Shown here: in pieces, positions 10,378-58,502 of the stretch | Position numbering within the stretch: the first letter of the stretch is position 1 | Layout: each line of letters opens with the position of its first letter | Source: Octopus bimaculoides | Lineage: Eukaryota | Length of the DNA: 64,000 nucleotides | NCBI RefSeq assembly: GCF_001194135.2 | Contig: NC_068987.1 | Location: 49,218,428 to 49,282,427, forward strand | Direction: 5' to 3' | The notes under the pieces: generated by a model | The model's input: the letters and a program-made list of their open reading frames with translations, nothing else | Databases searched by the model: none | What the model was told of the DNA's origin: nothing | Translations under genes and position numbers: made by a program

Positions 10378-13347
10378 AAAAGAAGTAGTAACCAGCCATT
10401 ATAAATAGACCAGTTGCTGGTCAGCAGAGAATGTCAAGAAGGTCAAGAGTACATGCAGACTGTGTTGATAGTCGTGTCTGTGCTAATATAATAATTATAC
10501 TATGATACTGAGTGGACGTTATAATGATCCAACCTTTTGCGGATAATAACACAGTACAACTGGTGGTCGTACAGTGCTAGATAAAAACATTCTATCAACA
10601 ACTTCGGAATATAACAATATCTGTCAGAGCAACAACTGTCATCAAAAGACAGATACAACAGTGGCAAAAGACTGCTTTACAACAGTGGCGATGAAGAAAA
10701 ACCAATTTATGCAAAGAGAAAAAAAAAAACATTCACACAGAGAGTTTAAACTAATTCACGTGGAAAATTAAATACCTCAACAAAAAAGAAACAAAAATCT
10801 TGTGCAAACTTATGAAAATCATAAAATATGGAAGACTCGTTAGCTGGGATAGTTGAGTTGCAAAAACAGCAACAACAAGGACAACAACAAGTATTGCAGC
10901 AGCAAATATTACAACCGATGAAGTTGATAACCAAACCGGAGAATATGTTTTCACCTGAACATGTAGCAAATTGCAGAAGTGAATTCAATTATGACCCCAA
11001 ACAAGAAGTAACCTTCAAGGCTTACTTTCAAAGATTTCAACAAATTTTTGAAAGAGAATGTAAGGACTGGACAGACGAAATGAAAATGCATCTAGTTTGA
11101 AGAAAACTAGGAACAACGGAGTAATTTCATATTGCCAAAAAAATCATCCAACATAAATTTCATCAACACAGTTGATATTTTGTGCTAAATGTTTAGTGAA
11201 AAGAGCTCATTGTTTAATACTAGATGGAGATGTTTAAACATAGAAAAGAGTGAAAACAAAGACTTCACTACTTACACAGGCAGAGTCAACAAAGAACATG
11301 AGAGATTTAGGATAGAATGCTTACTCCAGATTCTTTCAAGTGTTTGATTTTTGCACAAGGATTAACAGATAGAAGGGATGCAGAAATCCAAATGAAAATT
11401 CTATCAAAACTGGATATGGACCAGGATTTGACAATGCAGAAACTGTCAGAAGAGTGTAACAGAATATTAAAATCAAGGCATGATATGGCAGAAATTCAAT
11501 GGAAAGAGTGTTTCCACATATGACCAGTGCAAAAATGTCAAAAGACAAATAAAGTGTTGCAAGAAAAACAGAAAAATTATCAGGATGTAGACCCATGTAT
11601 AGCATGTGGTGGGATGCACCTGAAAAAAGATTGTCCATATAAAAAAGCAAAGTGTTTTCGCTGTGGATTTACAGGACATATAAAATCACACTGCAAAACT
11701 AGAATGATAGGGAAATGGAACAAACAAGGAAAAATAAATAGTTTGTCAGCAGGAAAAGTTGTGACTATAACAAACAGAAAATTCATGAATGTGAGAATTG
11801 AAAACACTTGTGTAAGAATGCAAGTAGACACAGGAAGTGATATCACAATTATTAATGAGAAAACATAGGAACAAATGGGTAAACCAAAATTATGTAGTTC
11901 AAACAAAATAGCATACAGTGTTATGGGAAGAAAATTATATTCCATGGGCGAACGCATTTGTAATATAATGTTCAAATGGCGAACCAAAAAAGTGAATGGT
12001 TATGTGTTGAAAAATCTATGAATTTATTTGGTACCGAATGTATGGAGACATTTAATTTATGGGATACACACATAAATGCTTTGTGCAATAACGTAAATGG
12101 AGCAGTCAAATGATCGAACGACATCGATGAACTGAAACAAAAAGAAGTGATGTGGAACATCATGTGTGAACTACCAGTAACTTTGGAAGAAATAAAAAGA
12201 AATGTGAGAAATGACAAATTTATTAATGAGATGAATAGATAACTGTGGTCAACAAAAGGAAATAAAAAAAGGTCTGACGCAAAGAACCACCAAGATGTGA
12301 ACAAGTACTCTATATATGATGGGGTACTAATGTACGCTCAGAAGGTGGTCATACCACAGACATTACAGAAGAGAATGCTAAAAGAGTTTCATGTGAGATA
12401 CCCAGGCATCTCTAGAATGAAAGCACTGATGCGAAGTTTTGTATACTGGACAAGCATAGACAAGGAAGTTGAAAAGGCTGCAGAGGATGTGCACTGGCAG
12501 CAAAACTAACTACTACAAAATATGAACCTTGGCCAGAACCTTGGTCCTGATTGCATATCGATTTTGCAGGCCCACTAAATCAATATTATTACTTAATAGT
12601 AGTGGACAGCTACACAAAATGGCCTGAGGTCATTAGGTGTAAACAAGCAACCTCATATACAGTAATAAACTTCTTACACAAGCTGTTTGCAAAATTTAGT
12701 GTACCAGATATAATTGTCTCTGATAACGGAACACAGTTTGTATCCTGTGAGTTTAAAAGATTCTGTGAGATTTTCACATTAGAACATAAAACTATATAGC
12801 ACCATATCACCCTATATCAAATGGAAGGGCTGAACAGTTCATGAACACTTTTAAGAGAGCTTTAAAGAAAGTTAATAAGGAAGCTACAGACAAGGTTGAA
12901 ATTCAACAATTCTTAAGTGTATACAGGGTAACTCTGAATCCAAATGTGCCAGAAGGAAGTTCACCAGCAGAATTAATGTATGCCAGAAAGGTGAAGTCAG
13001 TATTCGATAAACTGTTACCGGTGAAGAAGAAAATATGTACTAGTAAAGACATGCTAAAATTCTTTAGAATAGGTGATAAGGTATATGTAAGAATGTAGAA
13101 AAATGGCAAGCAAGAAATTGTAACATACATAGGAAGAATGATATATGGTGTAAGAAACAGAAATGGAATGGAAAGGAGACATAGAAATCAGCTTAAGGAA
13201 AGAGTCATAGAAAAGGAACCAACAAGAGTAGAAATACTTATAGATTGGCTATATGACACTTTTCAGGTACCAACACCATTACAAGAAGTCAAAACCACAC
13301 GTACAAGAAAAAGGTAGAACACTGAATTCCTATAAGTACACCCTAAG

Positions 13348-13799: not shown

Positions 13800-14445
13800 G
13801 AAGAGGTTGGCCCAGGAAGGCATGGGACAAGGTGGTGAAGCATGATCTTCAAATGTTGGGCCTCATGGGGGAATTGACTAGTGACTGAGACTTTTGATGA
13901 TATGCTGTGCTTGAAAAGACTTGTCAAGCCAAGTGAAATCATAGTCGTGGCCATTGCTAGTGTCATGTAAATGGCACTGATGAAATCGTAACCATGGTCA
14001 TTGCCAGTAGCATGATCTTTGAATGTTGGGTCTCACAGAGGTGGTGAAGCATGATCTTTGAATGTTGAACTCAAGGAGGTGGTGAAGAATGATCTTTGAA
14101 TGTTGGCCTCAAGGAGGAGATGACAAGTGACCAAGACCTTCGCAATATTCTGTGCTTGAGAAGACTCGCCAAGCCAAATGAAACCATAGTCATGGCTGTT
14201 ACCAGGGTTATCCAAATGGCACCCATGTAATCATAGTCATAGCCATTGTTGGTGTCATATAAATGGCACCCGTACAGGTGGCATATAAAGAGCACCCATT
14301 ATACCCTTGGAGTAGCTGGCATTAGGAAGGGCATCCAGCTGTAGAAACCACGCCAAATGCAACTGGAACCTGCTGCAGCTCTCCGGCTTATCAGTTCCAG
14401 TCAAACAGCATGGAAGTAGATGTTAAATGATGCTGATGATGATGA
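13800..14445 (+). mobile_element. RTE LINE 3' UTR / tail element with modular internal repeats
   Basis: Same modules as 42060-42590 (GAAGCATGATCTTTGAATGTTGG...; TGGCATTAGGAAGGGCATCCAGCTGTAGAAAC); (GAT)n tail. Confidence 0.75.
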
Positions 14446-14499
14446 TGATATGCATATATATCATCATCATCATCATCATCATCATCATCTTCATCGTCA

Positions 14500-14790
14500 T
14501 CATCATCATCATCGTTTAACATCCGCTTTCCATGCTGGCATGGGTTGGACGGTTTGACTGAGGACTGGCAAGCTAGAAGGCTCCAATCTGATCTGGTAAA
14601 GTTTCTACAGCTGGATGCCCTTCCTAATGCCAACCACTCCGAGAGTGCAGTGGGTGCTTTTACATGCCAGCAGCACGAGGGCCAGTTAGGTGGTACTAGC
14701 AACAACCACGCACAGAAGGTGTCTTTTATGTGCCACCTGCACGGGAGCAAGTCCGGTGGCACTGGCAATGACCACGCTGGAATGTTGTTT
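14500..14790 (-). mobile_element. RTE-tail-related SINE/LINE 3' end (family E)
   Basis: (CAT)n then GTTTAACATCCGCTTTCCATGCTGGCATGGGTTGGACGG...GTTTCTACAGCTGGATGCCCTTCCTAATGCCAACC. Further copies near 34385, 34800, 40670, 49040 and 57235. Confidence 0.8.
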
Positions 14791-15493
14791 TTCACAATGT
14801 ATATATTTATATATATGTATACATATANNNNNNNNNNNNNNNNNNNNNNNNNNNNNNNNNNNNNNNNNNNNNNNNNNNNNNNNNNNNNNNNNNNNNNNNN
14901 NNNNNNNNNNNNNNNNNNNNNNNNNNNNNNNNNNNNNNNNNNNNNNNNNNNNNNNNNNNNNNNNNNNNNNNNNNNNNNNNNNNNNNNNNNNNNNNNNNNN
15001 NNNNNNNNNNNNNNNNNNNNNNNNNNNNNNNNNNNNNNNNNNNNNNNNNNNNNNNNNNNNNNNNNNNNNNNNNNNNNNNNNNNNNNNNNNNNNNNNNNNN
15101 NNNNNNNNNNNNNNNNNNNNNNNNNNNNNNNNNNNNNNNNNNNNNNNNNNNNNNNNNNNNNNNNNNNNNNNNNNNNNNNNNNNNNNNNNNNNNNNNNNNN
15201 NNNNNNNNNNNNNNNNNNNNNNNNNNNNNNNNNNNNNNNNNNNNNNNNNNNNNNNNNNNNNNNNNNNNNNNNNNNNNNNNNNNNNNNNNNNNNNNNNNNN
15301 NNNNNNNNNNNNNNNNNNNNNNNNNNNNNNNNNNNNNNNNNNNNNNNNNNNNNNNNNNNNNNNNNNNNNNNNNNNNNNATATATATATGTATATATATAT
15401 ATATTTATATATATATATATATATCGATCATTGGTAAAACATAAATCTGAAAAAGAAGCACATTCTAAGTTATAGAGCAGTATATAATATAGT

Positions 15494-16625: not shown

Positions 16626-17541
16626 AGTGTTTTAAATGTTTGTGCCAATGTTACAATAGATAAAGCAGCCAGATTGATTCAGTCAAACTTTGCTACTCAC
16701 TGAAAAATTTATAATTTTAATCAATGATAAAAAAATATTATTTCAAAAACCAATTACACATTTCAGTTGAAATCGGTTCAGTTAGAAAAGAAAAGATTGG
16801 ATATCTTGAAATGACTTTTTTCCATTGTCAATAGTTAAGTGTTGAAATTATTGGTAAGTTGCAGGCAGAATTCTCTAGAAATCATTTAATGGAAACTGTA
16901 CAGAAAAAGAATTAAATTGATAATCTCAAAGCATGTGAATCCCACTGTCTCAACTACTAGATTATTTGGAGACAGTAGGATTAATAGTATTTCTAATAAA
17001 CTGAGAAATTGTCGTTGTCATTCAATCTTACTAGGGTAGAGTTTCGAAGTAGCTATTTCTTATGACTTGATATATTCTTTTCTTTTTCAAGCCGTAATTA
17101 TTCTTATTCGTCATGCACTTAAAATTACAATTCTAGAAAACTTTATTTTCAGAATTAAATATATTTTTTCAAATTACTGAACCCCACTAGCTTTTTCTTT
17201 TCCATTATTTTTTTTTTTGTCTTTTTGCATATTCTTGCTTGTCATACATTGGAAAAAAATTTCATGTTTTGTACATAAATTTTTTCCCTTGAATTAATTA
17301 AATTTTCTACTACATTTACAAAATTGTTACTCTGAATAATGTTTTTAACAAAATAATGTAGAGGGATAAGTGATACGAAACCCAAGACTGTAGGGGCCGG
17401 AAAAAAGTTTATCAGGAACATCATTAAATCAATGAAAATCTAGTTGTTTGTTTGAATTCAAGAGGGATAACTCTTAAACCGGTGTCGTGGGGAAAAAACT
17501 ATCAAAATTTGAGATTTCCTTGAAAAATAAAGCAAATCTTC

Positions 17542-17548
17542 TATAAAA
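17542..17548 (+). promoter_or_regulatory. Candidate TATA box upstream of the small ORF
   Basis: TATAAAA lies 81-87 nt upstream of the AAAATG start at 17629. Confidence 0.35.
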
Positions 17549-17628
17549 TGCTCCTAACAAATATTTTAAGAATGGAAGGAAGGGAGATCAAAGGATCAGG
17601 GGACAGAGGATTTTTGAAAGGAACGAAA

Positions 17629-17856
17629 ATGTTCCGCGTTCGGAAAATTTTTGTATTTGGAACCCTATTATATACAATAGGTTTAACAGCGGTATTCTTG
17701 AGCATGGACATTTACAAGAAAATGTCTAACAAAATCGATGAAGTGGATCATTATTTTCAAACCGAACGGATAAAAAGATATGAAGAAATACTAGAAAAAA
17801 GAGTAGAACGTAGTAAGAAGTATGCAAAATTGCTTGAAGAGGACAAGTTGCAATGA
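17629..17856 (+). CDS. Single-exon 75-aa microprotein: basic N-terminus, one TM helix, charged helical tail (unassigned; resembles small mitochondrial membrane proteins)
   Basis: MFRVRKIFVFGTLLYTIGLTAVFLSMDIYKKMSNKIDEVDHYFQTERIKRYEEILEKRVERSKKYAKLLEEDKLQ*. AAAATG context, no repeat similarity, AATAAA at 18029-18034 followed by U-rich sequence. The frame is also open from ATG 17548. Confidence 0.65.
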   Translation: MFRVRKIFVFGTLLYTIGLTAVFLSMDIYKKMSNKIDEVDHYFQTERIKRYEEILEKRVERSKKYAKLLEEDKLQ

Positions 17857-18028
17857 AGTTTATTATTCGGTCAGCCGGTTGTTGTATAAATGACTCGAGA
17901 CAATGTAACTTTACAAACTCTTGTTCTTCAAAGAATATTACGTAAAACATTTTAGAATTTTGTTTGTATTTCTTTATGAGAATGCACTCATCTGGACCCT
18001 TAACTGAAATTAGCAAGTATGTTTTGTG

Positions 18029-18034
18029 AATAAA
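18029..18034 (+). terminator. Candidate poly(A) signal of the small gene
   Basis: AATAAA ~170 nt after the stop, followed by CTTTGGTTTT. Confidence 0.45.
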
Positions 18035-20381
18035 AGTTATTCACACTTTGGTTTTATTTAATCTTATTTCTGCTAAAAAAGAAAAAGAATCCTAAAGACT
18101 GACTTGCTGTAAACATTGTCAAACAAAATGGTGTTTACAATCATTTGAAATTTAGACCACAAAGTGTCATCTACTAAATTACAATATCATCAACTTGCAA
18201 AATATTCCCGTAACTTTGTTGAATCAATGTGGAAACTTCATTCAGTTTGAGAAGTTAAACGTAACCTGTTACATATAATTCTTGAAAAGCGAAAGCGAAT
18301 TTAACTTTAATGAATTTAATTGGAAATGACAATTTTATTTTGATAAAAAATATAAGAAAATAGACAAAATATTCTTAGTTTTGTTTTTGATTGGTTTTAA
18401 AATGTGAGAGTAAGGGTTCCTGTCTCGTGGCCAGCAGACAGCATTTTGCATTTGTTTTTATGTATTTGTTGTTTTATAAGACGGAGGGTGTGATTTGAGA
18501 AAAATTTGGTTGCTTCTACTAGCAGAACACGCTATTTCTAATGAAGCTTGTTTTTAAAACACATGGAAAATATATATTTGTAAATTACATGTTTGCATTA
18601 CTTCTGTGAATATGAGAACCGCGAGTAGAGAGTCCCTGTGTCCAGTAATCTTGAACTTTTGGTTTCACAATCGAAATTCTGGTTATCAAATTTCTGATTA
18701 AATGTAAAGTATTTATATTGTCGATAAATTATCATCTCAGCAATTGTTAATTTAATTACGTAAAATTTTCTCAATGATTCGGTCTTTTTTTTATTGGTGA
18801 CCTTGAAGTCAGGCAATCTTTCGGTCTCTGTCAACAAAGAATGTTTATATTTTGTACTGAATAACGTTATGTGTAAGACCGGCTAATCAAGATGAATATT
18901 GTTTGCAATTTACAAAGGAAATAATTTTTTTTTTTTGCATATTCGTAATCTACATCTAAAACGTAGGGATTTTAATTTTTTTTTTTTTTAATGCATTTTT
19001 CAAGGAGAGGTGCGAAACTGCATTAGCCCCAAAAGCGCTTTTCTCATAAATTAGTTTAGACATTCTCTAATAACCATACATATACTAGGCTTAAGAAATA
19101 AGTCCTTGGGTTGATTTGTTTGACTAAAACCCTTCAAAGCAGTACACCAGCATGGCCACAGTCAAATGACTGAAACAAGTAAAAGAGTAACCTTTCAAAC
19201 ACTATATCAGCTAAGCAAATGACCCTCTCTAAATCACTGTAACATATTTAGAAAATTACCTCTGTTTCCTTTGACCATATAAATAACCTTAAACCATATA
19301 AATAAATTTAGACAGGCAAAATGAGTAAGACAAGATAAGGTAAATTTTCCTCATAAGTTTTCCAGAATTACATTTCAAAAAAGACTCATACACATCAATA
19401 TCCATTCTTAGACATCAGAAAAGCCAAAAAATATTTAAATATATAAGGCAAATGGAAAATGGCACATAATATGAAATTGACGAATCTTGACTAAATTTGA
19501 AACCTCAACATAAAATATTCTCTATAGCTTCTTCATAATCTGCTGGAGTGGCTCTCTTCCTGATACATTTACATGCCATGCGGTTAAAGAGAAGAAATCG
19601 TTGAAATTAGTCATTATTCATTTTACATCATTTTTTGAAAATCAAATTAGATATTAGTGTGGGAAAAATTGACTCGGAATCCAACAGAGAAAAGGATATT
19701 TATTGTTAAACACAAAAATTGTCCAAATGTTTTATTAGCAATCCCAATTACAAATTAGTCAAAGTTGAAAAATTTCTTGTAAAAAGAAGACATGCCACTT
19801 GTCTATGATTTGGGCTCTCTCAACTTCAACAACGACTATACCGACCAATTTTTACTCCCAAAGATGATGCAAAAATACAAAACGATGATGCAGTATTTGC
19901 AATGTAATGGTTTTAAACAGGTAAAGACAAAATTTGAAGAAATCAGAAATTACTCATTTTGTCCCAGTTACCTGTTTGTCCCACCCAGCAAATCCTGTTG
20001 CATCATTATCATCAACGTTATTTAATGTCCAGATTCAATCCTGGCGTAGGTTGGATGATTTGATATCTGACAAGTCGGAGGACTGCCTCATGCACTTGTG
20101 TCTTCATCGGCATGGTTTCTATGGCTGGATGATCTTAATGACAACCACTTTACATATGTGTATGTGTACATCTGCAAATATTGTGATATTTACATTTGTA
20201 AAAAGACGATACTCAGTATTTAAACTTTGCCATTCAATAAAAGGAAGTCGACAATTTAAGTAACAGATTATAAATGTCTAAAATTCTACTAGCGTGGCGG
20301 TTGTCCAATGCTTGAAATCATTCCAAAAATAAAAAGAATATATACTTAAGCAAAATCCACGTAATTACTGACAGGAGACAT

Positions 20382-48307: not shown

Positions 48308-48603
48308 CTGGAAAGAGAGAAAAAAGATGCATCAGTACCTGAATGCATATACCAATGTATATATACATGCTATATCCATGTACACACACACAAACACACA
48401 CACAGACACACACACACACTCACACACATGCACAAATACATACATATAGTTAGATACAAGTGTTTTTATATGAATGAGAAAAAGGAAGATTCATTGAATG
48501 AAGAACTCAATACATGCAGAGTCAAATATTGCCAACCTGGCATTGAGTGCTCTCATGTTTTATATAAAAATTTCACACATGTATGTATGTGTATAAATGA
48601 ATA

Positions 48604-48672
<69 letters not shown>

Positions 48673-51600
48673 NNNNNNNNNNNNNNNNNNNNNNNNNNNN
48701 NNNNNNNNNNNNNNNNNNNNNNNNNNNNNNNNNNNNNNNNNNNNNNNNNNNNNNNNNNNNNNNNNNNNNNNNNNNNNNNNNNNNNNNNNNNNNNNNNNNN
48801 NNNNNNNNNNNNNNNNNNNNNNNNNNNNNNNNNNNNNNNNNNNNNNNNNNNNNNNNNNNNNNNNNNNNNNNNNNNNNNNNNNNNNNNNNNNNNNNNNNNN
48901 NNNNNNNNNNNNNNNNNNNNNNNNNNNNNNNNNNNNNNNNNNNNNNNNNNNNNNNNNNNNNNNNNNNNNNNNNNNNNNNNNNNNNNNNNNNNNNNNNNNN
49001 NTATATATATATATATATGTGCACATATATGTATGTATATATTTCTCTCTTTTTACGCCTGCTTTCCATGCTGTCATGAGTTGGACGGTTTGACTGAGAA
49101 CTGGCAAGCTGGAAGGCTGCACCAGGCTCCAGTCCAATTTGGCAAGGTTTCTACAGCTGGATGCCCTTCCTAACACCAACCACTCCAAGAATGTAGTCGG
49201 TGCTTTTACGTGCCACCAGCATGTGAGCCAGTCAGGCAGCACTGGCATCATCCACGCTCATGTACATATATATGCACATATATGTATGTATTTATGCATA
49301 TGAATGTGTACACACACACACATGTGTGTGTGTGTGTGTACATTATCATTACCAACGCCGCCTCCCTTTATCTCTGATAATTTTCACTTACCATAATCAT
49401 CTGAGAGCTGAGTAGGCACATTCTACGCCCATTCCCAGAATCATTTCCATTCCTCGTTATATTTCTCCATCCATGCTTTCTCTTCTCTGCTATACTCCAT
49501 CCTTAATACCTCTTTCATCTCCTATCTCTTCCAATGCCCTCATATATCTAACATAACCCCTCCTCCCCCTTCAATTACTACAGCCACCTCTATCTCATCT
49601 AATCATCTCACTTCACATTCCTATGAAAGTTTGACCCCCCCCCCCCACGTCCATTCACCCAGTCCAATCCTCTGTATCATTTCACCTATATATTCCCTCC
49701 CACTGTACCACTCCCTCCATCTCTGTCTTTTTCTCTAAGTCTCCTTCTTCCTTCTCCTCCAACTGGAGATATCCTTGTATCTCTTCTACAACAAGATACC
49801 TATCTTTATCCTTCCATTATTCTTTTAGCCTTATCAACTGACACAAAGTCACCTCCCTCAATACTACTCCCCCTACTCAAGGGGACCTTTGTATTCTCTG
49901 ACTCTGCTGGTGTTGGTGCCATGAAAAAGCACCCAGTACACTCTAAATGACAATGATGATGAATTTTGGAAACAAAATATAATTGATAGGGTATCATAAT
50001 GAAAAGAATATAGTCAATGCAACCAACCATTTTGAATAAATTCATATTAAACATGCAAAACTGAAACAAGAAGCAAAAGAAAAATATTGATATTAACCTT
50101 TCATTGATATCAACCTTTCATTGATATTAACCTTTCTGATACCAACCTGGTCATGACCACCCCTCATCCTATGGCACGAACTTCCTGTTTTGACATGATT
50201 TATATTAAAAACTTCCATCAAAATTTCATGTCAATTTATGTCCCAAACACCAGCTTAGTTAGGACAAAGTTATTTTACTAAATGCTTTATTATTTTCTAA
50301 CTTAATTGAAGTAAAAGCAGAGGATTTCAACAGAAATATGGTAACAGAAGGGTCAATAATCACTTACAACCAAATTTGTCTTTCAAAGGCTCATCTAGTT
50401 AGTCATTTAAGTTGACATCATCATCATAATTTTAGCATCCTTATATGTCTGACTGAATTCACTGAGACAGATTTTCTATGGCTTGATGCCCTTACCAACC
50501 CTCACCTGTTTCCAAGTAAGGTAAGATTTCCTCATAGTTAGACATATTTTCACAGAATATTGGATACTACTTTTATGATAATGACACTTGTTTATAATTA
50601 GTTTGTGACGCCAAAACAAGGAGATACTAACACACACACACATGTACTATGGGCTTTCTTTTAGTTTCCGTTGATTAAGTCCACTTACAAGGCTTTCATC
50701 ACCCACAGTTATACTTGAAGACATTTTCCCAAGGTTCCATGCAGTAGGACTGAACCTGAAACCATGTGGTTGAGAAGAGAACGCCTTAACCACACAGCTA
50801 TGCCTTTTGACATGAAATCCAAGATGTCACTCACAAACAAGTATAATGTTATAACATGTACCATACTTTCACTCATTGGTTTAGGTGCTTGTGTATTAGT
50901 CATAAACAGATGTGACACTCTCTCAGCTCTCTTTCATTTGGCTCAGTGGAATACTGATGTGACAGCTGGTAAAAGAAAGAATGACATCAGGACTTAACTG
51001 GTAGTCATTTTCATCTGAATAGACAGGAGCAATGGGAAATGAAGTGCCTAGCTCAAGGGCACAACAAGAGCACTCAATCTTATGATTGTGAGCCCAACAC
51101 CCTAACCACTTGGCAATGGCACCTTCACATGAATCAAAATAAATTAACAGTGGATCATTATCATCTGAAAGTACATATGTCTACCAATCATGTTACAAAC
51201 ATCTTTCTGTTTGTAGTCTAAAGAGACTGATGTCTGTACACTATACCAATTGTTGTGATTCTGCATTGCATTTAACTGAGAGGAGACATGTAATTGTTTC
51301 AGTAAAAGTCATCTTCACTTTGTAGCTCTTTAAGCCTTTTCTTACAATATTTCTATTGAAATACACTGCTTTTCTTTCAATTAATTTTTAAAATATGAAA
51401 AAATTTAATAAAATAACTGTCCTTATTAACTTGGTGTTTGGGACATAACATGGAATCTTGCTGAAAGGTTAATTTAGATCACTTTTAAACAAGAAGTTTC
51501 TATAATTGAACTGAAGATGGTTGCAGGTGGGTTGGTATTGAAAGGGTTAAGAAGCAAGTTGTACTCCTTATTGAGCCAACTGTGTGTGTGTGTGTGTGTG

Positions 51601-52806: not shown

Positions 52807-53795
52807 CATAGCTGAAAGAACTGCTTGTGATTGGTATGCCAAGTTCAAAAATGGAAATTTTGACCTCAAAGACACACCTCCTTCTGGCCGTCCAGTTGAG
52901 TTCGATGAAGAGTGATTAAACCAACTTTTGCACAAAAATTCTCGTCAAACAACAAGGGAACTGGCAAAGAAAATGGAATGCTCCCACACTGCTATAGAGA
53001 AGCATCTTCACTCGATGGGAAAGGTTCAGAAGAAGTATGGAGCATGGGTTCTGCATGCTTTAAGTGACAACAACAAAAATCAACAAGCCACAATCTCCGC
53101 TGGTTTGCTTGCTTGTCACTGCTCAACTCATGTACACAAACAACGGTTTCTTTACCAAATTGTTACTGGCAACGAAAAATGGTGCCTGTACATCAATATC
53201 AAACAGTGTAAAGAATGGCTTAGCCCTGGTAAACAAGCAACACCGCGTGTGAAACAAGATCTTCATCAGCGTAAAATGATGTTGTGCGTATGGTGGAACT
53301 AAGAAGGGATTATCCATTACGAATTGCTTGAACGGAACCAAACAGTCAATGTGGAACTCTATCTATGTTCAACAGATGGAATGACTATTCAAGAGAAAAG
53401 ACCTAATCGGCAGCATGGAGTTTTTCTTCTGCACAACAACGCCCGCCTTCATATCGCTAATATGACCAAGGAAGCCATTCAAACGCATGGCTGGGAAGTG
53501 CTGCCACACCCGCCGTACCCTCCTGATTTGGCACCAATGGATTTCCACCTCTTTCGATCTCTTTCAAATGCTATGCGCAGAGTTTCGTTCAATACTGATG
53601 CAGAACTGAGAGCTTGGTTGGATCAATTTTTCGAGTCAAAATCGGGTGATTTCTACTAACGAGGTATTGAAAATCTTGTTGAATGTTGGTAAGAAGTTGT
53701 AAACAATAAGAGTGAATACATTATTGATTAATTAGTTGTTATTTTTTATTAAACCTTTTAAAAAATTTAAATTTAAACAAAACGGCATTTGATCT
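52807..53795 (+). mobile_element. Mariner (DD34D) transposase pseudogene in a PDZ-LIM intron, 5' part in a gap
   Basis: WYAKFKNGNFDLKD..SGRP, WVLH.L, TGNEKW, HNNARLH, HPPYPPDLAPMDFHLF with 34 residues between the 2nd and 3rd catalytic positions; internal stops. Confidence 0.92.
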
Positions 53796-54992: not shown

Positions 54993-57477
54993 CATACATA
55001 TATACATACATATATACATACATATATACATACATACATATATACATACATACATACACACACACACATAAATACATATAGTGTAAATACAATGAACAAT
55101 GAAACAGACAACACAAGAAGAACAAAGTTTGATAAATATGGTATTAGCTGGAAAGAGAAAGTATCTTAATTAGTTCTCTTATTGAAGTAAAGATGTGAGA
55201 AGTTTGAGGTAGTGAAAAAAATTGATAAAGTGTTAGAAATCGAGTGGCTGTCTTGTTCAATGTGGGGTGGAATTAAAAAAAGAGAAAGGGACAGGTGTTT
55301 AGATGTGTCCACAAGTATAAGAGATGAGTAGAGATGTATGTGTGTATATGCATATGCAAGTGAACAGTGTGAATGTATGGAGGAGGATGAGTCAATGGGG
55401 GAAGGGGTACATGTGTACGTAAAAATTGTGTTAGAGTCTTGATGTGTAAATATTGGAATGGTGAGGGGGTAAGATGTAGATAGTGGGGATGGTGTGAATG
55501 GGGGTGAGACACAGGTAGAGATGTGGAAGAAAAGGGGAGGGAAGTAAGAGGAATAGTTGTGTAATTCCAGAGTAGGAAGTGCAAGTTAGGAAAAGTGAGA
55601 TGATGAATTTAGACCAAAGGGCATGTACATTGGGAGGAAAAAGATAAGTTCTGTTCCCTCTGAAAGTGAGAAACAGGTAAACCACTGCTAAGTTGGATGT
55701 CCCTGAGATACATTCTGCAAACCTGTCAGCCTACACACACACACATACAATAAGCATGGTTGTGTGGTTGAGAAATTTGCTTCATAACTTAAGCAATTGA
55801 ATTTGGGTTCAGCCCCACTGCTCAACACTGCGAGCAAGCATCTTCTTAGCCCTGGGCTAGTCAGAGCCTTGTGAGAGAATTCTGTGGACAGAAACTGAAA
55901 GAAGCCCATCAGATATATATATATATATATATACATAAACACACACATGTATCTGTGTGGGTATGCATGTATGTTTGTGTGAATGTTTGCAAAACAACTT
56001 GAGCTACAGGTACAATGACATCCCCATTTGCAGTTTATGTAGAAGCTGTGACATCATTGTTTGTGATTGGGTTGCAGCTGGTCAAGTTTGTTGACATTTC
56101 CTGTCAACAAAATTGTCTGCTATCTCTGTACTCTTGAATTCCTCCACAACTCAAAAAACAGGAAAAGGATGGCAACAGGAAGTACATTTGGCCATAAAAT
56201 TTACTTCTACTTAAATCATACAGCACAGAAAACATGTAAAGTTGGGGCTAACAAACTGAATGGAATGGTAGATATTGTAATTAATCAGCCCCAGTACATT
56301 ACAAGTACTTTATTTATTGACCTTTGACCCACTCACCTCATACCTTGAGGGACCACCCAGACATCTCATCACCATTTTTCTACCTCTTCAGCACCACTGA
56401 TCATTCTCACCCTCTCTTCTAAAATGTGGAAAGTCACATTTAGTCCTCCATAGTAAGAAACCTACTCTGCTCTTCTTCCTTCTCACATACTTTAACTCTT
56501 CATTTCCTAGCATAAAGCCACCCACCTTCACCCCTGCTGCAGGATTCATAGTCTTGTAAGCTGATTGGTAGTCAGCATGGAGCATGAATGTTAAATGATA
56601 ATGATGATGATTCCAAAAGGATGAAAAGCAAATATGACTTCTGTGAGATTTGAACATTGAATGTAGAGATCCAAAATGATTGCCTCATAACAATTTATCC
56701 AATGCTCCACTGACACTGCCAAATGACTACCTTATTAGCTAATATCCCTGATATAGACCAAACAAACTATGAAAGCAGCCTCTTCTACTTTAACTAACAA
56801 ATAAGACAAATTATCAATCAATATTTTACACAAAACATGCAATATATGTTACTTAAGTCCACAAGAAAAGGAATGAATGTGACACTGTTTTGTTCCTCTT
56901 CTCCAATCATAAAACTGGCTGTGTATCTATATGGCTCTCTGTCAGGTACAATGATGAGTGTTCCACTTGATTCGATCAACTGAACAGTCTTTCCTGTTTG
57001 TTTTTCTTTTATTTGTTTCAGTCATTTGACTGCAGCGCCACCTTGAGTTGAACAAATTGACCCCAGGATTTATTCTTTGTAAGCCTGGTACTTATTCTAT
57101 TGGTTTCTTTTGCCAAACCACTAAATTACAGGGATACAAACACACCAACATCAGTTGTCAAGCAATGGTGGTGTGGGACAGACACAGACACACACACACA
57201 TATATATATGTGTGTGTGTGTGTGTATCATCATCATCATCGCTTAATGTCCACTTTCCATGTTGGCATGGATTGGATGGTTTGACTGAGGACTCACGAGC
57301 CAGATGGCTGCACCAGGCTACAATCTGATATGGCAGAGTTTCTACAGCTGGATGCCCTTCCTAATGCCAACCACTCCGGGAGTGTAGTGGGTGCTTTTAC
57401 GTGCCACCAGCATGAGGGCCAGTCAGGCGGTAGTGGCAACGGCCACGCTCAAATGGTGATTTTTTACATGCCACCTA

Positions 57478-58502
57478 GACAGCTGCAGGAGAAATACCTA
57501 GCCAAAGATAAACCTCTGTACCTGGCTTTTGTTGACATGGAGAAAGCCTTTGACAGGGTCCCCCGATCCCTTATCTGGTGGTCAATGACGAAACTAGGGA
57601 TAGATGAATGGTTAATGAGAGCTGTGCAAGCCATGTACAGGGACGCTGTCAGTAAGGTGAGGGTTGACAACAAGTACAGTGAAGAATTCCAGGTAGAGGT
57701 AGGGGTCCACCAAGGTTCAGTCCTCAGCCCCCTCCTATTTATCATAGTCCTCTAGGCAATAACAGAAGAATTCAAGACAGGATGCNNNNNNNNNNNNNNN
57801 NNNNNNNNNNNNNNNNNNNNNNNNNNNNNNNNNNNNNNNNNNNNNNNNNNNNNNNNNNNNNNNNNNNNNNNNNNNNNNNNNNNNNNNNNNNNNNNNNNNN
57901 NNNNNNNNNNNNNNNNNNNNNNNNNNNNNNNNNNNNNNNNNNNNNNNNNNNNNNNNNNNNNNNNNNNNNNNNNNNNNNNNNNNNNNNNNNNNNNNNNNNN
58001 NNNNNNNNNNNNNNNNNNNNNNNNNNNNNNNNNNNNNNNNNNNNNNNNNNNNNNNNNNNNNNNNNNNGTACCCAGTGTAAGCTATGGACACATAAGAGGT
58101 GCAGCAATATCAAAGGAAGGCTAACTAGGAAGATAGTTTTTGTATGTGGCAGATGCGCAGGAGCAATAAATACTGAAAATGTGCAGAGAACAACTTCTGC
58201 CACATTCCAGGGAGAAAAACTAGAAGTAGTTGATAGCTTCTGTTACCTAGGTGAAGTAGTTGATAGCTTCTGTTACCTAGGTGACCAAGTCAGTAGCAAG
58301 GGTGGGTGCTCTGAAAGTGTAGCTGCTAGAATAAGAATAGCCTGGGCAAAGTTCAGAGAGCTCCTACCTCTGCTGGTGACAAAGGGCTTCTCGCTCAGAG
58401 TAAAAGGTAGACTTTATAACACATGTAGACTGTAAAAGGTAAACTGTATGACACATGTAGCCATGCTACATGGCAGTGAAACATGGGCCATGACTGCTGA
58501 GG
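57478..58502 (+). mobile_element. RTE LINE reverse-transcriptase fragment (gap in the middle)
   Basis: LQEKYLAKDKPLYLAFVDMEKAFDRVPR...GVHQGSVLSPLLFIIVL, then EVVDSFCYLGDQVSS...WAKFRELLPLL; same family as 41590. Confidence 0.92.

Follow-up and report, generated by a model that had tools for sequence, protein, structure and literature searches.

A predicted single-pass membrane microprotein conserved in frame between octopods and cuttlefish

Does a short open reading frame (ORF) in transposon-rich octopus DNA encode a protein and, if so, where does that protein begin and to what family does it belong? The question is raised by a stretch of 64,000 nucleotides from Octopus bimaculoides (contig NC_068987.1 of assembly GCF_001194135.2, positions 49,218,428 to 49,282,427 of the forward strand), referred to herein as the window and numbered from its first nucleotide. 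On the + strand, an ATG at 17629, in the context AAAATG, opens a frame that continues to a TGA at 17854-17856 and specifies 75 amino acids. The initial annotation took this ORF for an intact gene, coding for a microprotein with a single transmembrane (TM) helix. The 75-codon frame is indeed open, but it makes up only the 3' three-quarters of a 102-codon coding sequence (CDS). A longer ORF in the same frame, present in the list of ORFs, extends from an ATG at 17548 (ATG1) to 17856 (+) and encodes 102 amino acids; a second in-frame ATG at 17572 (M9) would yield a 94-amino-acid product, and an in-frame TGA at 17521-17523 closes the frame 5' of ATG1. The features of the locus, from 5' to 3', are as follows.

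17459..17498, +: octopod-conserved block CAAGAGGGATAACTCTTAAACCGGTGTCGTGGGGAAAAAA, 40 nucleotides, 50-90 nucleotides upstream of ATG1 (three-species alignment)
17542..17547, +: "TATA-like box", immediately 5' of ATG1, not conserved
17548..17856, +: full conserved CDS, 102 codons plus TGA, with an "A" at position -3 of ATG1; an ungapped 102-codon ORF is present in contig L001 (an Octopus-like species) and in Argonauta
17572..17574, +: second in-frame ATG, M9, in the context AAGAATGG, equivalent to the start of the cuttlefish protein (MMKGREIK)
17578..17646, +: basic Gly-rich juxtamembrane peptide GREIKGSGDRGFLKGTKMFRVRK, codons 11-33, the most conserved segment (invariant columns in alignments)
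17629..17856, +: 75-codon ORF of the initial annotation, the C-terminal three-quarters of the CDS (ORF list)
17647..17706, +: predicted single TM helix IFVFGTLLYTIGLTAVFLSM, codons 34-53 (Kyte-Doolittle; AlphaFold2)
17707..17853, +: charged helical C-terminal tail, codons 54-102 (alignments; AlphaFold2 helix)
17857..18060, +: probable 3' untranslated region (UTR) with conserved islands, including AATAAA at 18029-18034

By itself, an ORF of this size is unremarkable in the window, which has a G+C content of 35.5%, contains 2,888 N and belongs to a transposon-rich draft assembly. There are 51 ATG-initiated ORFs of at least 75 amino acids and 15 of at least 102 amino acids in it, compared to 13.5 and 1.8, respectively, in first-order Markov simulations, and transposon remnants account for most of this excess. 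Gene status was judged by looking at other species, and it is conservation of the frame across species that makes the gene real.

Such relatives were found in octopods and cuttlefish. When 5.8 billion proteins were searched, the 102-amino-acid product of the window itself was recovered, together with a second protein of 102 amino acids (P0002) from the Logan assemblies of SRR11869384/91/94, which represent an Octopus-like species (contigs L001-L003). Scanned with a HMMER profile, a set of 1.84 billion representative proteins yielded a 94-amino-acid protein (P0003), of which residues 2-86 matched profile positions 9-93, and the 90% cluster of this protein contains four more cuttlefish variants of 74-94 amino acids (P0004-P0007). 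To these a search with the family alignment added a 102-amino-acid protein of Argonauta hians (P0008), deposited as "hypothetical protein Ahia01_001010500". The cuttlefish orthologues, 93-94 amino acids in length, belong to Sepia esculenta and two relatives; P0004 was assigned to Sepia (Acanthosepion) esculenta via its run accessions. SRR19578108 is a larval RNA-seq run of S. esculenta (PMC10141105), and ERR12945500 consists of short reads of the same species (bioRxiv 10.1101/2025.04.22.649952).

With BLASTP, the window protein aligned to that of S. esculenta from M9 onward over 83 residues, without gaps, at 47% identity and an E value of 1e-23. None of the orthologues (93-102 amino acids) contains an internal stop, and indels are confined to the vicinity of the C-terminus. 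No non-cephalopod relatives were detected at E<=0.001 in the HMMER scan of 1.84 billion proteins and the word-indexed searches of 5.8 billion proteins, and no relatives were recovered from JGI metagenome contigs scanned with the family motifs. The family is conserved across coleoid cephalopods (octopods and cuttlefish), with no detectable relatives elsewhere. The limitation of the HMMER matches to cephalopods agrees with the earlier suggestion of a lineage-restricted microprotein. The gene had also been thought likely to have been missed by annotation; this is not so, because the exact 102-amino-acid sequence of the window is already present in UniRef / MetaClust, and in Argonauta the orthologue has likewise been annotated, as a hypothetical protein.

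When the window was compared to Argonauta by blastn, positions 17545-17846 gave one long, clearly orthologous match (74.8% identity, 0 gaps). In this pair the dN/dS ratio (omega) of the frame was 0.25 (bootstrap 95% interval 0.13-0.48), while out-of-frame controls on the same DNA gave 1.07 and 1.60. The ratio was 0.30 for L001 versus Argonauta and ranged from 0.12 to 0.34 among the three cuttlefish, in which the CDS is 93-94% identical, as opposed to 88-89% for UTRs and flanks. The closest pair, the window and L001, gave an omega of 0.48 over the full ORF and 0.73 over the 75 codons from 17629; its non-coding flanks are 85-93% identical, approximately the same as the ORF, so that this pair alone is uninformative with regard to coding. 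The similarity of flanks and ORF in L001 is nonetheless the kind of result to be expected if the frame were open by chance, in DNA that is conserved but non-coding or that derives from transposons, with no gene at all, and the setting, an AT-rich window full of transposon remnants, would suit such a reading as well. Several results argue against it. Six species, drawn from two cephalopod superorders and with protein identities of 41-47%, have kept the frame open for ~300 nucleotides; only in this frame does dN/dS fall well below 1; the CDS is the one long blastn match left at the distance between Octopus and Argonauta; and the sequence is single-copy within the window and devoid of any transposable element (TE) domain. 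A chance ORF is effectively refuted by the present data, and we assign it a negligible probability.

Selection on one frame, ungapped alignments to distant relatives, and a single copy without a TE domain together show the ORF to be a protein-coding gene under purifying selection, whose frame is intact in six species. That this is a real, conserved coding gene, with boundaries corrected as described below, is in our judgment close to certain. Purifying selection on it dates back to at least the split between octopods and decapodiforms. The view of the locus as coding has therewith stood up in respect of its orthologues, which carry no stops or frameshifts and have dN/dS values well below 1, and in respect of transcripts, which were found in cuttlefish.

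The start codon and the length are another matter. Translation had been placed at 17629, with a product of 75 amino acids; the best-conserved 19-27 codons lie upstream of this ATG, and the conserved protein is 94-102 amino acids long. Codons 9-27 constitute the most constrained stretch of the protein, with an omega of 0.04 between the window and Argonauta, and over codons 1-27 the window and L001 differ at six nucleotides, all six of them synonymous. The conserved motif, GREIKxSGxxGxxKGTKM(F/Y)RxR, is located mostly upstream of the 17629 ATG. Cuttlefish proteins open with MMKGREIK, which aligns to octopod M9-E-G-R-E-I-K, and octopods possess eight extra N-terminal codons (MLLTNILR in the window and MFLSKLLR in Argonauta). 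ATG1 has an "A" at position -3 in all three octopods and is preceded by a stop in frame. Judging from these features, the octopod product is probably 102 amino acids long, with a start at M9 (94 amino acids) as the alternative.

What can be said for a 75-amino-acid product, with the upstream frame being a 5' UTR that is open by chance, is that M28 (17629-17631), part of KGTKM(F/Y)R, does not vary among the six sequences, that its A-rich Kozak context (AAAATG) is preserved, and that one gene caller picked a 74-amino-acid form on contig L019. The DNA of L019, however, holds the intact extension, as does that of L015, so that the 74-amino-acid form reflects the choice of the gene caller. Moreover, the 19 codons that such a start would relegate to the leader are those with an omega of 0.04, the substitutions separating the window from L001 in codons 1-27 are of the synonymous kind only, the upstream motif GREIKxSGxxGxxKGTKM matches the cuttlefish proteins residue for residue, and a scanning ribosome would reach two upstream ATGs, with an "A" at -3, before it arrives at 17629. 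We consider a start at 17629 improbable as the source of the main product, while a minor short isoform produced by leaky scanning to M28 is conceivable. The distinction has a practical side, in that tagging or knockout of the 75-amino-acid version would leave out the 19 most conserved residues.

The corrected start also affects how the 5' flank is read. A TATA-like box had been noted as a promoter element, and the sequence TATAAA is present at 17542-17547, but it directly abuts ATG1. Because the same position reads CTGTGAA in L001 and CGACCAA in Argonauta, TATAAA is not a conserved promoter element; the simplest reading is that it belongs to the Kozak region of the true initiation codon. Further upstream, the ungapped block of the window-L001 alignment begins at ~17459, at the conserved block CAAGAGGGATAACTCTTAAACCGGTGTCGTGGGGAAAAAA, which itself begins with CAAG and has equivalents at ~637-677 of L001 and ~9929-9966 of L022 (Argonauta). 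This block may be either the start of an exon after an AAG acceptor or a core-promoter or 5' UTR element. On the 3' side, the AATAAA reported downstream of the ORF is present at 18029-18034 and is retained in L001, and the aligned position in Argonauta reads TGTGAAAAATAA; a poly(A) site is predicted near this hexamer. An Rfam scan of the window at gathering thresholds gave no match.

The CDS had been described as intronless, and the whole of it (17548-17856, +) does lie within one exon. The octopod exon boundaries are predicted ones, the transcript evidence coming from cuttlefish contigs. An S. esculenta RNA-seq contig from SRR19578108 (L014) can be aligned to the genomic contigs L005-L013 over L014:418-961 and nowhere else, the matching genomic stretch in L005 being 633-1175. 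Transcripts of cuttlefish use a GTGAGT splice donor located 218 nucleotides 3' of the stop. The presence of genomic GTGAGT at the 3' boundary therefore places the whole S. esculenta CDS in one internal exon, which is followed by a spliced 3' exon. Three contigs from a related cuttlefish (L004, L020 and L021) have a 3' junction identical in place to that of L014, and at their 5' ends they either end 20 nucleotides before the ATG (L004) or run into genomic sequence upstream of the acceptor. Positions 1-23 of L004 are an Illumina adapter (CCTACACGACGCTCTTCCGATCT) joined 20 nucleotides upstream of the microprotein ATG, and the 5' end of this contig may be a real cDNA end or an assembly artefact.

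L014 (1-1411) has the appearance of a complete, bicistronic, spliced mRNA. Its first ORF (54-401) encodes a Cys-rich protein of 115 amino acids with a signal peptide and an RKKR site, which matches the Pfam family DUF4787 (PF16029) at 2e-22; this ORF occupies the upstream exon(s) and terminates ~16-22 nucleotides short of the junction. The microprotein is encoded by the second ORF (461-742), which begins 59 nucleotides after the stop of the first. What looks like a bicistronic link to DUF4787 is seen on this single contig, and other cuttlefish transcripts are without the upstream exon. No DUF4787 exon was detected on the + strand of the window between 1 and 17547, either by tblastn with the Sepia protein or by a scan for the Cys pattern, and none was detected in the 10 kb upstream in Argonauta; such an exon could sit further upstream or in assembly gaps. 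A literature search on DUF4787, PF16029 and IPR031985 found no papers. A precedent for the arrangement is the bicistronic microprotein locus sloth1/sloth2 of Drosophila, the products of which are orthologues of SMIM4/C12orf73. The S. esculenta ORF resembles it in being the second cistron behind another small ORF on a spliced contig, but its companion ORF does not encode a paralogue, coding instead for a secreted, Cys-rich DUF4787 protein, and the bicistronic arrangement was not found at the octopod loci examined.

Both structural elements ascribed to the protein at the outset, a hydrophobic helix of ~20 amino acids and a K/E/R-rich amphipathic tail, were recovered. The former corresponds to a hydrophobic stretch of 19-20 residues, IFVFGTLLYTIGLTAVFLS, with a Kyte-Doolittle (KD) mean of 1.99. 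The window's best 19-mer has a KD mean of 1.99, those of the remaining octopods reach 1.92-2.20 and that of cuttlefish 1.51, and one hydrophobic 19-mer is found at the same position in all five sequences analysed. The tail contains 13 K+R and 12 D+E, has an omega of 0.22 relative to Argonauta, and includes a conserved core, Y/F-E/Q-E-I-L-x-K-R-V/I-x-R-x-x-K, at which the hydrophobic moment reaches its maximum (codons 71-82). The 15 residues before the TM helix carry a net charge of +4 to +5 and the 15 residues after it one of -2 to +1 (five of five sequences). Because the charge is higher before the helix than after it, the positive-inside rule predicts an N-in/C-out topology. AlphaFold2, supplied with a six-sequence alignment, modeled residues 11-93 of the 94-amino-acid form as one continuous helix, with a mean pLDDT of 75 and values of 80-89 over the TM helix and the proximal tail. 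With 93-102 amino acids, exactly one predicted TM helix, and a reading frame under purifying selection (omega 0.25-0.30 in octopods and 0.12-0.34 in cuttlefish), the product is an uncharacterised single-pass membrane microprotein, of a generic layout that is also common to many ER, Golgi and plasma-membrane microproteins.

It was this layout that had suggested a kinship to mitochondrial proteins such as PET100, PET117 and PIGBOS1. PET100 is a cytochrome c oxidase assembly microprotein, the TM helix of which starts almost at residue 1, and it assists a large complex as a small, membrane-anchored factor. PIGBOS1 is a mitochondrial outer-membrane microprotein of 54 amino acids in which the TM helix forms the very N-terminus; PIGBOS1 and PET117 are vertebrate or opisthokont families. 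The protein described here falls into the size class of PET100 (~70-100 amino acids) and, like PET100, has one TM helix close to its N-terminus and a helical tail rich in K/E/R, but it has no sequence or profile similarity to PET100 and carries a conserved basic, Gly-rich peptide of 25-33 residues before the TM helix, which is its most constrained part. Likewise, the MFR-type basic start of the 75-amino-acid ORF, the one TM helix and the charged tail recall PIGBOS1 and PET117, but MFR is internal in the real protein and the family is seen in cephalopods only. Membership in PIGBOS1 was rejected on the contrast between the conserved 25-33-residue peptide that precedes the TM helix here and the N-terminal TM helix of PIGBOS1. 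SMIM-type microproteins are mostly accessory subunits or of unknown function. SMIM11, SMIM15 and SMIM8, as well as ATP synthase subunit e, are similar in having ~60-100 amino acids, one TM helix and a Lys/Glu-rich C-terminal helix; for all of these the hhalign probability was <=1.7%, no PDB chain of a solved small subunit matched the family profile, and the GxxxG motif of subunit e is missing from the protein here.

Database searches gave no support for any such kinship. In a Pfam-A hmmscan of the 75-, 94- and 102-amino-acid forms and six members, neither Pet100 (PF09803) nor PET117 (PF15786) was matched at E<=10, and at this threshold no family was matched in more than one of the six members. 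The SpoIISA toxin family (PF14171) reached 16 bits in a single member, below its cut-off of 27, and was dismissed as a compositional chance match to a TM helix plus a charged helix. Searches of PDB chain sequences with phmmer and with a profile gave nothing below an E value of 1, the best profile match being 1.8, and a Foldseek search of the AlphaFold2 model against the PDB gave zero matches, a single long helix being an uninformative query. The family profile was also aligned by hhalign to 13 human microproteins (PET100, PET117, PIGBOS1, SMIM4/8/11/15, COX14, COX16, ATP5ME, MICOS13, CEBPZOS and DAPIT), and the resulting probabilities of 0.1-1.8% are of lead-level value. The probability was 1.8% for PET100 and 0.1% for PET117, and 0.4% for PIGBOS1, for which this is a weak test.

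Orthology, obscured by divergence, to one of the mitochondrial assembly microproteins already described (PET100, PET117, PIGBOS1 or a similar one) would account for the likeness in layout (basic N-terminus, one TM helix, K/E-rich helical tail), and detectable similarity does fade fast in short proteins. But six members are without a Pet100, PET117 or shared Pfam match at E<=10, the best PDB profile match stayed at 1.8 even though many small membrane subunits are included there, the hhalign probabilities for all 13 candidates, a lead-level result, are below 2%, and the conserved N-terminal peptide has no counterpart in PET100, PET117 or PIGBOS1. We regard orthology to one of these proteins as very unlikely.

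What, then, might the protein do? No homologue of known location or function was found in Pfam, in the PDB, by Foldseek or in the searches of 1.84 billion proteins. On balance we favor, as the best explanation overall, a single-copy, one-exon gene for a one-TM microprotein that is probably an accessory subunit. According to this proposal, the basic, Gly/Ser/Thr-rich N-peptide of ~25-33 residues would lie on the cytosolic or matrix ("inside") face of a membrane and the charged amphipathic helix of ~48 residues on the opposite face. The TM helix would dock onto a larger membrane complex, with the invariant N-terminal juxtamembrane peptide and the EIL-KR-R-K motif of the tail as putative interaction surfaces, and the protein would act as a small accessory or regulatory subunit, by analogy with other single-pass microproteins.

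Which membrane this might be is a more tentative matter. Small mitochondrial inner-membrane proteins (PET100, COX16, subunit e) follow the pattern of a moderately hydrophobic helix with basic flanks and, after it, a Lys/Glu-rich helix. A mitochondrial reading fits best because of the moderate TM hydrophobicity, the positive flanks and the K/E-rich helix, although the three acidic residues in the octopod N-terminus are atypical of a presequence. A mitochondrial accessory subunit is accordingly put forward as a possibility by analogy and with low confidence, and the respiratory-chain assembly factor initially proposed is plausible as an analogy drawn from layout. An ER or secretory protein of type II is nearly as likely as a mitochondrial one, and some other location makes up the remainder. 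In the ER case, the microprotein would be a signal anchor with a cytosolic regulatory N-peptide and a lumenal or extracellular tail, maybe coupled to DUF4787. The charge distribution, which predicts N-in/C-out, the hydrophobicity of the octopod TM helix, sufficient for ER insertion (KD 1.9-2.2), and the S. esculenta contig with a complete signal-peptide DUF4787 ORF 59 nucleotides upstream are consistent with this arrangement. K/E-rich, highly charged helices are unusual in the ER lumen, however, and the tail is of just this type; it is also without Cys or features of the N-glycosylation type, the TM helix of cuttlefish is marginally hydrophobic (KD 1.51), and the DUF4787 link is seen on one contig, with the exon not found upstream in the window or in Argonauta. 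Taken by itself, an ER or secretory location is somewhat doubtful.

A further proposal goes beyond the accessory-subunit explanation favored above: the protein may represent a new coleoid-specific membrane microprotein family, the N-peptide of which regulates or assembles an organellar complex and which ancestrally was a downstream cistron with DUF4787. We consider this unlikely as it stands; if true, a coleoid family with a DUF4787 bicistron would be a lineage-specific innovation in a clade whose genome and RNA biology are unusual. Annotation often overlooks conserved microproteins, and these are frequently subunits or regulators of essential membrane machines. Being single-copy, constrained and without a Pfam family or detected relatives beyond the cephalopods, the present one qualifies as a candidate lineage-specific part of cephalopod cell biology. 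At present it is an uncharacterised hypothetical protein already in the databases.

The surroundings of the gene contain several kinds of repeats. At ~11527-12800 (+), an ORF with a zinc-knuckle-like pattern (CX2CX4HX4C, no Pfam match) is followed by an rve integrase core, which marks an LTR retroelement. The remnants at ~11527-12800, 52928-53659 and 57330-57755 (+) include mariner-type fragments (Transposase_1/DDE_3) and a fragment of a reverse transcriptase (RVT_1). Another repeated element is present in at least three copies (~14391-15475, 48428-49251 and 57330-57500), with the translated motifs LQLDALPNANHS..GAFTC.QHEGQ.GG and LPDWL.CWWHVKAPT. Every copy adjoins TA/CA microsatellites and assembly gaps (N runs), and the element may be a SINE- or LINE-associated repeat.
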